Of a DNA stretch of 64,000 bases, positions 27,884 through 31,354 are shown one piece after another. The stretch covers positions 1 to 64,000 of the forward strand of contig CDROCS010003093.1 in the NCBI GenBank assembly GCA_977020255.1. Direction: 5' to 3'. A program made the translations under genes and the position numbers. How positions within the stretch are numbered: the stretch's first letter is position 1; each line of letters starts with the position of its first letter. This stretch comes from Obrimoposthia wandeli (taxonomy: Eukaryota). The notes below the pieces were generated by a model that saw only the letters and a list, made by a program, of their open reading frames with translations, did not search any database and had not been told where the DNA came from.

Positions 27884-28341
27884 ATGAGTCCATCTATAGT
27901 AGTTTAAGGCTGTGGGTGATCTAGTATCTATACTGAGTGCTAATATACGTAAACCTGTTTACTCTGTATTATCTTAAACAACGTTAAATACAAGTTTGGC
28001 GGTATGCTTCCCAAATCAGCAGTGAGCTATTTAATTGTAAATAATGTCAAACTACCGGTTTTAGGATTATTGACCTTAGCTTTATAGCACACTTTTGGAC
28101 TTATCTATCGGATGAATACATGACAACATTTACCCTCTGGCAACTAATATCAAATTAGTGCTTTGTATCTGACAAATTACTCCGCAATAAAAGCCTAAAC
28201 TCCCGTCGTTTATGTAATAATTAGCCTAACCTGCACCTCTAGCAGCACTTCACTATTCAAACTTGAGAACTCACCTTGCCACAGTTTTTTTCAACTCATC
28301 ATAGATCACATAATATGCCTTTTACTCTAGCCAGTTTTCGC

Positions 28342-28800
28342 ATGCACAGTATTTTGTTGCCAAGCTTTATACTACTGCTATTTACGCTTTTATTTTCGGT
28401 AACTGTTGCTGCTAAAACGAAAGAAGGGATAGATTTAGAAGCGGTAATGAAGCAAATGCGTTTTGAATACACTCAAGCGATGAAAACTGACTCAGCTGAT
28501 AAATTTACTCAGCACATTATAGAGTTCAAGCGTCAATTGGAAATCGCCAAGAAATTCCCGCATTCTAAAGAGCGCCTGGAAAAAGCAACGGAGGGATTAA
28601 ACAAGGTAAGTGATGCTATCAATGCCGTAGATATCCCTGTTAGTTCTGATAGCTTACAGAGAGTAAAAAAGAGTCTTTATGTGATCGACGATCTAAGGAA
28701 TCAATATCATGACAAAAAGCCAAGTTTATGGCAGAGGTTTTACGAAATGTTTTTTGGAACACCTGAAGGAGTAGAAAAACTGGTTCTATTAGAAGACTAA
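28342..28800 (+). CDS. Periplasmic cytochrome b562-family protein
   Basis: Signal peptide, DLEAVMKQM (Met ligand), RNQYH (His ligand); start uncertain (28276, 28315 or 28342). Confidence 0.78.
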   Translation: MHSILLPSFILLLFTLLFSVTVAAKTKEGIDLEAVMKQMRFEYTQAMKTDSADKFTQHIIEFKRQLEIAKKFPHSKERLEKATEGLNKVSDAINAVDIPVSSDSLQRVKKSLYVIDDLRNQYHDKKPSLWQRFYEMFFGTPEGVEKLVLLED

Positions 28801-28899: not shown

Positions 28900-30258
28900 T
28901 TATGCTATTTTTGCTGACACATAGAATCTGATACACGATTTTCCAGCTGATTTAGCCTGGTACATAGCATGATCAGCATACTCAATTAACTGAGCGGGTA
29001 GCTGTGTATCGTCTGGGTAATGACTCACCCCTATACTTGCACTAACCAATATAAGATCAGACTCGTGCTCTATTTTCATATTGCATAACTGCAGCGTGTT
29101 ATTTGCAATGCGCTGCAGTATTTCTGGGCTAGCGTTAGGTACCACCATCACAAACTCATCACCACCCATACGCGTCACCAAATCATTTTGGCGTAAAGAG
29201 GCTTTCAGGCTCGATCCTATTTGCTGTAGTAGCTGATCTCCGCGCTTGTGACCTAATGTATCATTTACTTGCTTAAAACCATCTAAATCTAAGAAAAACA
29301 CCCCCACTTGGGCATTGTTCTGCTTTGCATTTTGTACATATTCAACTATTTTTTGATCTAACAATCGTCTGTTACCCAACCCTGTTAACGGATCAGTTAA
29401 AGCCTGATCTTTGTGTAAACTGTGTTGGTTTCGATAATGAGTCAAAGTTAAAAACAACATTAAAACCACTAATAAAGCGATCAAGAAATAGCTAATGAGC
29501 CACATTTTACTTTGTTGCTGCTCCATATCTGTTTCTTGAAGGTGCTCTGCAAAAAACCGACTCATTATCGCTAAATCATTTTGTAATCTAAGCTTCTCTA
29601 ATTGTTCATTCAAGCTCCAATCTCGTTGTTTCAAATCCAGTAAAATCTGTATATGCGTATTTACATTTTGCCATATTGGCAATATATACGGCGGTAGTGC
29701 GTCTGTATTTGGCGCTTCGCCAAGTGGCTTTCTATTATAAGTAACAAATTGACTCGTCATGCCATCAAAAATTTTACGCTGCATATATTGCCTAAAGCGA
29801 GTCACTTGCATTAGAGAAAGTAACTTAGAGCGATGAGCTTCACTTAGTGCCGCATTCACATTGTCTGCTACTTCAGGAAGATAGTTCAGTGAGTTGTGCA
29901 ACACAGCATTATTAGATTTAAGTTGTTCAATAATTGAAAACTTTTCGTCTAATAATAACTTCAAATTGGGTATGGTGCTGCTTAACTTGGTCGGTAATAG
30001 CGGCGGTTGATCTAATGCATCAGCGTATTCTTTGTGTGCTTGATTCAGCGCATCATAATTGCTGAAATACCAACTGTTCATTCTTAACACTTGTCTATCT
30101 AGATCTGCATCTAATTTCTCTAGTGTACTAACATAATTATGAATTACATTTTTTTGTAGCTGCTGATTGGCTTTCTTAAACTCAATATAGGTTAAAAATA
30201 CAGCTAAGACGATAACAGCCAATGTGAGTCCGTATGCCAAGCGTCTGAATGTAATCAT
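28900..30258 (-). CDS. Membrane diguanylate cyclase with a DAHL-type periplasmic sensor domain
   Basis: TM-periplasmic-TM layout; LEKLDADLDRQVL...NYDAL and KSNNAVLHNSLNYLP resemble DAHL; D.LTGL.NRR, LDLDGFK.VND..GH..GD, RQND I-site, GGDEF. Confidence 0.85.
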   Translation of the reverse strand: MITFRRLAYGLTLAVIVLAVFLTYIEFKKANQQLQKNVIHNYVSTLEKLDADLDRQVLRMNSWYFSNYDALNQAHKEYADALDQPPLLPTKLSSTIPNLKLLLDEKFSIIEQLKSNNAVLHNSLNYLPEVADNVNAALSEAHRSKLLSLMQVTRFRQYMQRKIFDGMTSQFVTYNRKPLGEAPNTDALPPYILPIWQNVNTHIQILLDLKQRDWSLNEQLEKLRLQNDLAIMSRFFAEHLQETDMEQQQSKMWLISYFLIALLVVLMLFLTLTHYRNQHSLHKDQALTDPLTGLGNRRLLDQKIVEYVQNAKQNNAQVGVFFLDLDGFKQVNDTLGHKRGDQLLQQIGSSLKASLRQNDLVTRMGGDEFVMVVPNASPEILQRIANNTLQLCNMKIEHESDLILVSASIGVSHYPDDTQLPAQLIEYADHAMYQAKSAGKSCIRFYVSAKIA

Positions 30259-31304
30259 GGCAGGAGCTCAGGGTGTATTGTCCCATTCAAGCTCTGTAAG
30301 AACTCGCTAATAAGCAGCACATTTTTTTGTGATATACGTCTGCCTAATTGATGCTTAGCCATTAATTTAATAACGCCTTCTAAACTTTTTATTGAGCCAT
30401 CGTGTAAATAAGGGCCACTAAGCGCTACATTACGTAGAGATGGGACCCTAAATACATGTTTATCCTCTTCTCTTTTAGTCAAGTTATAGCGCCCTAAATG
30501 AGCATTGCCCTCTTCTAGCCCAGCGGGACGGTAAGGAATAATCACTCCCAGCTTTTGCAATAAGTTACCACCGACGTTTTTCCCTTGATGGCAGGCAATG
30601 CAGCCAAAGCGCTGGAACACCTCATAACCTTGTATCGCACTTTTGGAAATGGCCATTTCATCCCCAAGCAAATAACGATCAAACAGCGATGGCGTCGTTA
30701 AAGCCGTTTCATAAGCAACTATTACAGCACTGACATTGTCTTTAGTGATACTTTGCCCGCCCTTAGAGGAGCTAAAAACACGATCAAACTGCTGCGTATA
30801 CTGAGGCGCATTTTTTAGTTTGCGAATAATCTCATTCCAAGTAAGCCCCATTACTTTTTTACCCTTCACTAATTTATCAAATTGGTGCGCTGCAGAATTG
30901 AGCTGCCCTATCCAACCCAGTTTATAATTGGTAGATAAATTAAATATTGATGTGGAGTTGTGCCCTGTCATTTTACCAGAGTACATTACTGGTCGACTGT
31001 CAGCACTGCTACCTCCAGATGAGAATTGATGGCATGTTGAGCAAGAAATTTTATTATCTCGAGAAAGGATTTTATCAAAAAACAGTTGTTTACCTAGCAA
31101 CATCTTCGGGGTGATCTGCTCAGGCCATTGGATAGGGGTGATGACCATATTCGAAGCCGCTAAAAGAAACGCTGCTTGTAATGAAACTAGCAAAATAACA
31201 ACTAAGCTCAAACACTTACTTTTATTTCCCAAAGCTCTTCCCCATTTTACAATCCAGCACTGACTAAATTTACTCCTGTAACTTAGTCCATTGTCTATAA
31301 ACAT
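30255..31304 (-). CDS. Diheme cytochrome c peroxidase/MauG-family protein with atypical active site
   Basis: Two CxxCH motifs (CSTCH, CIACH), LGKQLFFD..LS, FRVPSLRNVA..GPY.HDG; 4-bp ATGA overlap with the DGC gene. Confidence 0.87.
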   Translation of the reverse strand: MFIDNGLSYRSKFSQCWIVKWGRALGNKSKCLSLVVILLVSLQAAFLLAASNMVITPIQWPEQITPKMLLGKQLFFDKILSRDNKISCSTCHQFSSGGSSADSRPVMYSGKMTGHNSTSIFNLSTNYKLGWIGQLNSAAHQFDKLVKGKKVMGLTWNEIIRKLKNAPQYTQQFDRVFSSSKGGQSITKDNVSAVIVAYETALTTPSLFDRYLLGDEMAISKSAIQGYEVFQRFGCIACHQGKNVGGNLLQKLGVIIPYRPAGLEEGNAHLGRYNLTKREEDKHVFRVPSLRNVALSGPYLHDGSIKSLEGVIKLMAKHQLGRRISQKNVLLISEFLQSLNGTIHPELLP

Positions 31305-31354
31305 AAAGACAGTGTTTTATCAAACACTGCTTATTAATTACTTAGAGAAGTTCT

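Follow-up and report, generated by a model that had tools for sequence, protein, structure and literature searches.

Bacterial signalling enzymes that are controlled by contact with a small sensor protein encoded beside them include the cyclases and kinases served by H-NOX (with HaCE or HnoK) and NosP (with NahK), and a periplasmic repressor acts on a cyclase by protein contact in the YfiR-YfiN (TpbB) system. Of these sensor proteins, H-NOX and NosP bind b-type haem and act in the cytoplasm; YfiR is haem-free, and the periplasmic domain of YfiN is not a DAHL domain. To our knowledge, the known haem-based partners of enzymes of cyclic dimeric guanosine monophosphate (c-di-GMP) metabolism (H-NOX, NosP) are cytoplasmic, and bacterial peroxide sensing is mainly intracellular, via OxyR and PerR. 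The DNA analysed here, a stretch of 64,000 nucleotides referred to as the window (positions 1 to 64,000 of contig CDROCS010003093.1 in assembly GCA_977020255.1, listed under Obrimoposthia wandeli), contains a candidate sensor that differs from these in being a periplasmic, covalent diheme cytochrome of the CCP_MauG family, which includes the cytochrome c peroxidases (CCPs). Its gene overlaps that of a membrane diguanylate cyclase with a periplasmic DAHL domain, and the haem protein is likely to be the signal-sensing partner of this DAHL receptor.

Sensing through a separate periplasmic protein has been described for VirA, whose periplasmic region senses sugars via the periplasmic protein ChvE (PMC9149312). 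Partner-dependent periplasmic sensing is known, then, and a haem partner of the CCP type does not appear to have been described for it. No characterised example of a diheme peroxidase paired with a DAHL cyclase was known to the sequence-only reading of the window, and a full-text literature search covering about 8.4 million papers and preprints revealed no description of a CCP-receptor pair, absence there being no proof of absence.

A conserved pair of overlapping genes

The two genes lie on the reverse strand of the window, with that of the haem protein upstream:

30255..31304, minus strand: gene of the CCP_MauG-family periplasmic diheme protein (open reading frame, ORF, of 349 aa as listed)
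28900..30258, minus strand: gene of the membrane diguanylate cyclase (452 aa; first transmembrane helix TM1, periplasmic DAHL domain, second transmembrane helix TM2, GGDEF domain)
30255-30258, minus strand: ATGA shared by the stop codon of the CCP gene and the start codon of the cyclase gene (direct sequence reading)

The ATGA overlap, which the sequence-only reading had also noted, indicates translational coupling of the two genes. A CCP-DAHL module was defined as a CCP_MauG gene lying directly upstream of a DAHL receptor gene, on the same strand, and overlapping or abutting it; the window pair, with its ATGA overlap, has this organization. The assembly containing the window (1.35 Gb, 6912 contigs) is a mixture of many bacteria, so that searches within it resemble searches of a metagenome. 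It holds at least 47 CCP_MauG matches and six DAHL matches, and each of the six DAHL genes immediately follows a CCP gene of the same orientation. These six pairs are on contigs of very different composition; the overlap is 4 nt in four of them, and the remaining two show overlaps of 8 and 17 nt or a gap of 3 nt. The outputs behind the six DAHL domains are GGDEF, PAS-GGDEF-EAL and PAS-histidine kinase.

The pairing extends to the closest relatives of the CCP protein, for which one genome per species was scanned (28 loci, 17 of them full-length). A DAHL gene recognized by its hidden Markov model adjoins the CCP gene in 13 of the 17 full-length relatives, mostly with a 4-nt overlap, and in a fourteenth (L024) a DAHL is adjacent by way of an overlapping ORF. 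Relatives with the pair belong to the Alpha-, Beta- and Gammaproteobacteria and the Bdellovibrionota, and include a metagenome-assembled genome (MAG) labelled 'Deltaproteobacteria'. A census was made of 351 genomes of the Gammaproteobacteria, the class of the nearest relative, with other phyla represented by examples. DAHL scored above the cut-off in 52 of the 351 genomes (63 matches), and a CCP gene is directly upstream at 55 of 61 DAHL loci. At one locus (L073, G049:C3) the pair has been split by IS66-type ORFs (1-542 and 585-938), and the CCP gene is 3.3 kb upstream of the DAHL gene. The census genomes contain about 450 CCP_MauG matches, of which roughly one in eight is DAHL-linked.

Precomputed Pfam annotations gave further instances. 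A CCP_MauG gene followed by a DAHL-GGDEF gene is present in a complete 5.2-Mb genome (AP025282.1) and on two metagenomic contigs, one of which has exactly the synteny of the window (ubiK, CCP, DAHL-GGDEF, b562, EamA, LysR). The same input is followed by DAHL-SpoIIE in Sediminitomix flava (Bacteroidota) and by DAHL-PAS-kinase-receiver in Aliterella atlantica (Cyanobacteria), and the Myxococcota are also among the groups with the pairing. Other outputs found behind CCP-DAHL are GGDEF-EAL, histidine kinase, hybrid histidine kinase, Hpt-HATPase, methyl-accepting chemotaxis protein and GAF-adenylyl/guanylyl cyclase. The order CCP then DAHL, mostly with a 4-nt overlap, thus occurs at about 90% of the sampled DAHL loci; these represent six or more phyla, and their output domains are of eight or more kinds. 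The pairing is beyond chance: every DAHL gene of the assembly is preceded by a CCP gene, as are 55 of the 61 census loci, to be set against the total of about 450 CCP_MauG matches. One input pair on many outputs is the signature of a portable sensory module. The proposal that the two genes form a functional unit is supported by this conserved, coupled order across phyla and outputs, and by the tree described below, in which a branch separates the linked CCPs from the stand-alone ones.

Two loci depart from the usual arrangement. A 774-aa ORF in a MAG of the Nitrincolaceae (L034:3908-6232) was considered as a natural CCP-DAHL-GGDEF fusion and dropped, because the CCP part loses its register near the C-terminus, at about residue 322, and the retained TM1 would misplace the DAHL domain across the membrane; it is probably a 1-nt error of MAG assembly. 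At the other (L083, G297:C28, 2643-7011), two DAHL histidine kinase genes stand in tandem behind a single CCP gene, and one haem protein may serve two receptors there.

The receptor and its kinship with VirA

The cyclase has two hydrophobic helices (TM1, approximately residues 7-27; TM2, approximately residues 252-272), between which lies a DAHL domain (PF19443, 58.1 bits with a cut-off of 38), and a GGDEF domain (PF00990, 158.5 bits):

29530..30129, minus strand: DAHL periplasmic domain, residues 44-243 (Pfam; modelled as an all-helical stacked bundle)
28936..29403, minus strand: GGDEF domain, residues 286-441 (Pfam)
29152-29166, minus strand: GGDEF motif, residues 365-369, intact (sequence reading)
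29182-29193, minus strand: I-site RQND (RxxD), residues 356-359, five residues before GGDEF, which is I-site spacing

The protein therefore has the sequence features expected of an active diguanylate cyclase with product inhibition, and Pfam and motif reading bear out the periplasmic DAHL domain and the intact GGDEF with I-site that had been noticed in the unaided sequence. Residues 1-290 were modelled by AlphaFold2 from an alignment of 70 CCP-linked DAHL sequences; the model has high confidence (pLDDT 93.1, pTM 0.82) and consists of helices only. The structure that it matches best is the helical bimodular (HBM) domain of McpS, aligned over 200 residues (VIA-align Z 14.9; Foldseek E 0.01). Next is the TorS sensor domain, one of whose entries is the TorS-TorT complex (Z 12 over 187-209 residues), and PilJ is also among the best matches; for helical bundles, Z values of 12-15 are only moderately specific.

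In VirA of pTiC58 (L129:15832-18330), residues 40-259 match the DAHL family over its full length (131.7 bits, E 4e-38). The NCBIfam model NF010411 ('VirA-like sensor kinase', N-terminal 255 positions) is matched by 61 of 70 CCP-linked DAHL N-termini, and the window cyclase matches its positions 8-255 at E 6e-10. Judged by these profile matches, the periplasmic domain of Agrobacterium VirA is itself a DAHL domain. The identification is new: the name DAHL is not applied to the VirA periplasmic domain in the VirA papers examined, and no description of the DAHL domain was found in the full-text literature search, where absence is again no proof. ChvE-VirA supplies an experimental precedent for the docking of a periplasmic protein on DAHL, and because the VirA domain is DAHL and VirA acts through ChvE, DAHL may be regarded as an established reader of periplasmic partner proteins.

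CCP-linked DAHL domains have a polar signature consisting of D69 (68 of 70 sequences), K114 (57 of 70), N122 (60 of 70) and H202 (63 of 70), and the window domain has it too (D69, within NYD, K114, N122, S123 and H202). The residues at the four signature positions in VirA are R, G, D and E, and two DAHL domains without a CCP likewise lack the signature. These polar residues are candidates for an interface with the CCP or for a shared ligand site.

The haem protein and its distal pocket

The protein encoded upstream of the cyclase matches Pfam CCP_MauG (PF03150) with 124.6 bits (cut-off 25.6). Compared with PDB sequences by phmmer, it is most like canonical peroxidases (N. europaea CCP, 1iqc, 2e-50 over residues 58-342; S. 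oneidensis CcpA, 3o5c, 1e-49), and its match to MauG is far weaker (1e-11). Its best NCBIfam matches are MbnH (TIGR04039, 145.6 bits, cut-off 362.85) and MauG (TIGR03791, 122.8 bits, cut-off 443.85); with scores below both equivalog cut-offs, and Met rather than Tyr in the ligand column, it falls outside both of these families. The phmmer alignments of residues 54-342 to solved peroxidases give the following assignments:

31029..31043, minus strand: haem c motif 1, CSTCH, C88-H92, of the peroxidatic (low-potential) haem
30906..30917, minus strand: GWIG segment with the inter-haem Trp131
30846..30863, minus strand: GKKVMG segment in place of the NPxEMG motif of the distal pocket
30588..30602, minus strand: haem c motif 2, CIACH, C235-H239, of the electron-transfer haem
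30354-30368, minus strand: KLMAK segment with M315, the Met ligand of the electron-transfer haem

The distal Gln (Q141) and the Asn of the Ca site (N116) are also conserved, so that every residue said to be kept in the sequence-only reading (both CxxCH motifs, bridging Trp, Gln, Ca-site Asn and Met ligand) is in place. The cavity of the peroxidatic haem in the N. gonorrhoeae peroxidase is formed by Phe97, Gln108, Pro112, Glu118 and Met119 (PMC10094543). The corresponding columns of the window protein read Gly130 (the residue preceding Trp131), Gln141, Leu145, Val151 and Met152, two of the five being kept. Val151 (codon GTA, 30852-30854) aligns under the catalytic Glu of NPxEM (Glu114 in P. aeruginosa, Glu118 in N. 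gonorrhoeae), as had been read by eye. The loop of His71 was also correctly seen to be replaced (Tyr108 occupies the column), but the change is not distinctive: of the 29 stand-alone CCPs in the sample, 25 have Val or Ile at this position. Loss of His71 was dropped as a discriminator, most of these stand-alone proteins having no His at that column either.

Single-residue variants of the conserved Glu or Gln are reported to be inactive (PMC10094543), and the E277Q variant of BthA, altered at the equivalent Glu, has no peroxidase activity and forms no bis-Fe(IV) state (PMC6405878). Because Glu variants are inactive in BthA and in peroxidases, and because the distal Phe and Pro are also replaced in the clade of the window protein, normal peroxidase activity is unlikely. 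The earlier suggestion that the protein is not a detoxifying enzyme is in keeping with this.

A word search of 5.8 billion proteins yielded 22 clusters at 48-70% identity to the window protein, below which identity falls to 43%; the window clade comprises the 23 CCP sequences that were aligned. The Phe column is Gly in all 23, and the Pro column is Leu in 21 and Phe in two. The Glu column (V in 12, K in three, I in two, A in two, E in three and D in one) is set in a conserved xMGLSW context and covaries with the Gln column: 17 of 18 sequences with Gln carry Val, Ile or Lys, and all five sequences with His in place of Gln carry Glu, Asp or Ala, accounting for five of the six sequences with one of these three residues. 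There is little or no variation in the xMGLSW flank, in both haem motifs or at the Asn and Met positions, the Trp bridge is kept, and GxKVMGLSW is a new conserved motif. No conserved carboxylate near the GKKVMG motif was seen in the alignment of the 23 sequences.

The replacement of three of five cavity residues could also be read as the decay of a peroxidase that is heading for loss beside a cyclase that works alone. This is very improbable: the reading frame is intact, the haem motifs, Trp, Ca-site Asn and Met are invariant in the 23 clade members (46-70% identity), the new motif GxKVMGLSW is itself conserved, and relatives preserve both the gene pair and its synteny. The clade alignment indicates that the pocket is stably remodelled under selection rather than decaying.

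Glu retention was compared in an alignment and quick IQ-TREE tree, unrooted, of 100 CCPs, 71 of them DAHL-linked and 29 stand-alone. A single branch (SH-aLRT 92) divides the 29 stand-alone proteins from the linked ones, and the linkage label needs a single change in this sample, whose stand-alone members are the top Pfam scorers and a few others. Glu is kept in 27 of the 29 stand-alone CCPs (Lys and Gln in the others) and in 48 of the 71 linked CCPs (68%; His, Val, Leu, Gly and more in the others), a difference with Fisher p = 0.01, uncorrected for kinship. The Glu/non-Glu state changes at least 10 times on the tree, and about one third of linked CCPs have no Glu. Thus, Glu loss is enriched among linked CCPs and does not define them; it marks the window clade, not the pairing, and the idea that Glu-to-Val is a hallmark of the pairing is not borne out by the comparison at this column. 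The window protein itself is in a well-supported clade (100) with a long stem, together with two other Val members and one Glu member, these fellow sequences being from the same assembly or from related MAGs. Because 48 of the 71 linked CCPs keep Glu, the ancestral DAHL partner looks like a competent peroxide-reactive haem protein from which the window clade is derived, and the clade is probably a variant without fast peroxide turnover, acting as a receptor rather than as a detoxifying enzyme. Outside the DAHL-linked group, one locus (L125, G296:C9, 1064-3732) has two tandem stand-alone CCPs with Lys and Gln at the Glu column.

A different role for the diheme protein would be that of a peroxide-driven modifier, oxidising or cross-linking a DAHL residue as MauG does on preMADH or MbnH on MbnP, and so switching the receptor covalently. 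MbnH and MauG are the top NCBIfam matches, although below cut-off, members of the family are known to oxidise partner proteins at long range (PMC6405878), and the near-invariant His202 and the Tyr68-Asp69 of CCP-linked DAHL domains are possible targets of modification. We nevertheless consider covalent switching decidedly unlikely, as the ligand of the electron-transfer haem is Met, as in canonical CCPs, and not the Tyr of MauG and BthA, the PDB matches to canonical CCPs (2e-50) far exceed that to MauG (1e-11), and the clade has no Glu of the kind needed for the high-valent state, which does not form in BthA E277Q (PMC6405878).

Several observations weigh against a sensing role for the haem protein in partnership with DAHL. 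A CCP neighbour is missing from about 10% of DAHL genes, and the partner of VirA is of quite another kind, which means that a CCP is not indispensable to DAHL; the 68% of linked CCPs that retain the catalytic Glu may be plain active enzymes, and so the partner in most systems; the single change of linkage label comes from a biased sample; and the resemblance to other helical bundles may reflect a common arrangement alone. The alternative is that the CCP is a periplasmic peroxide or redox enzyme that is merely co-transcribed with the receptor, that DAHL binds a small molecule itself in the manner of McpS, and that the operon serves to co-regulate a stress enzyme and a signalling protein. It would suit the best structural match of the DAHL domain (McpS is a direct binder of organic acids), the full catalytic pocket of two thirds of linked CCPs and the DAHL genes without a CCP neighbour. 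It is hard to square with the presence of one enzyme family, translationally coupled, before about 90% of DAHL genes across phyla and whatever the output, with the confinement of linked CCPs to one side of a branch, or with the loss of Glu from a third of them in at least 10 changes and the conserved non-catalytic motif of the window clade. We judge this alternative to be unlikely, and prefer the reading in which the haem protein senses the signal and the DAHL receptor transmits it.

The upstream limit of the two-gene unit is set by a further feature:

31309-31330, minus strand: terminator-like hairpin, after ubiK (BMFP) and ahead of the CCP gene

The start of the CCP gene is likelier to be TTG at 31232 (31230-31232, in frame) than ATG at 31304, because the latter falls within the T-tail of the hairpin and the former gives a 325-aa precursor with a typical signal peptide, the hydrophobic core of which is at residues 31-50. 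The nearest CCP homologues have 327-329 aa, close to this length. A promoter scan at the locus gave a number of sites not above that in shuffled sequence. Converging on the cyclase gene is a gene for a cytochrome b562-like protein with a signal sequence (28276-28800, plus strand), which could be a periplasmic redox partner or merely a neighbour. The b562-like gene adjoins the pair in one relative's contig, is 4 kb from it in another (L128) and is not present beside it in two more (L127 and L014), and was dropped as an obligatory third component for these reasons.

Proposed mechanism and comparison with known systems

In the scheme that we infer, from docking and signal to the way in which c-di-GMP responds, the diheme protein would be exported to the periplasm and would dock on the helical DAHL domain, by likeness to ChvE-VirA and TorT-TorS. 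Its state would then be relayed via TM2 to the cytoplasmic GGDEF domain, altering the synthesis of c-di-GMP. What is read may be the binding of a ligand to the low-potential haem, which is five-coordinate, or the redox state of the two haems, or both. Because partners in the wider family keep a full peroxidase pocket, the ancestral signal would most likely be hydrogen peroxide, or periplasmic redox poise read by the electron-transfer haem of the CCPs. For the window clade the ligand candidates are H2O2, NO, O2, CO and sulfide, among which the sequence cannot choose.

A broader reading, whose chances we put at about even, is that DAHL-coupled CCP diheme cytochromes are widespread, uncharacterised extracytoplasmic haem sensors that report peroxide, a diatomic gas or redox poise by docking on a VirA-type domain, the Val clade being derived from them as a receptor pure and simple, without catalysis, an enzyme turned sensor subunit. 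If so, a periplasmic diheme cytochrome and a transmembrane receptor would read external oxidants or redox conditions into c-di-GMP, phosphorelay, chemotaxis or cyclic AMP signalling, by means of a module that is common (about 15% of the sampled gammaproteobacterial genomes). Because roughly one eighth of CCP_MauG matches are DAHL-linked, many genes annotated as 'cytochrome c peroxidase' may encode sensor subunits, and the window clade would offer a natural transition from enzyme to receptor.

The canonical bacterial CCPs (those of N. europaea and N. gonorrhoeae, the latter named BCCP, and CcpA of P. aeruginosa and S. oneidensis) are homologous to the window protein over its full length and have in common with it the pair of haem c sites, the His/Met haem, and the Trp, distal Gln and Ca-site Asn residues; unlike them, the window protein has Gly, Leu and Val for the distal Phe, Pro and Glu, and its gene is coupled to that of a DAHL receptor. 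MauG, MbnH and BthA are of the same Pfam superfamily and act on a specific partner encoded nearby, but they have a six-coordinate Tyr-His haem and the Glu, whereas the window protein has a Met ligand and no Glu (PMC6405878).

TorT-TorS, XylFII-LytS and QseG-QseE resemble the proposed system in that a periplasmic sensor with a stacked helical bundle forms a complex with a periplasmic or outer-membrane partner; they differ in having no detectable sequence relationship to it and in that their partners are haem-free. ChvE-VirA is similar in the Pfam family of the receptor domain (DAHL), in the perception of the signal by a separate periplasmic protein and in the relay through TM2 (PMC9149312). The partner of VirA, however, is a solute-binding protein and not a diheme c-type cytochrome of the peroxidase family; virA is preceded by tzs and by no partner gene, whereas the partner gene described here is translationally coupled; and VirA, which has none of D69, K114, N122 and H202, has a kinase output in place of GGDEF. 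The link to VirA would make DAHL a general docking platform for diverse periplasmic partner proteins, with a solute-binding protein in the one system and a haem protein in the other.

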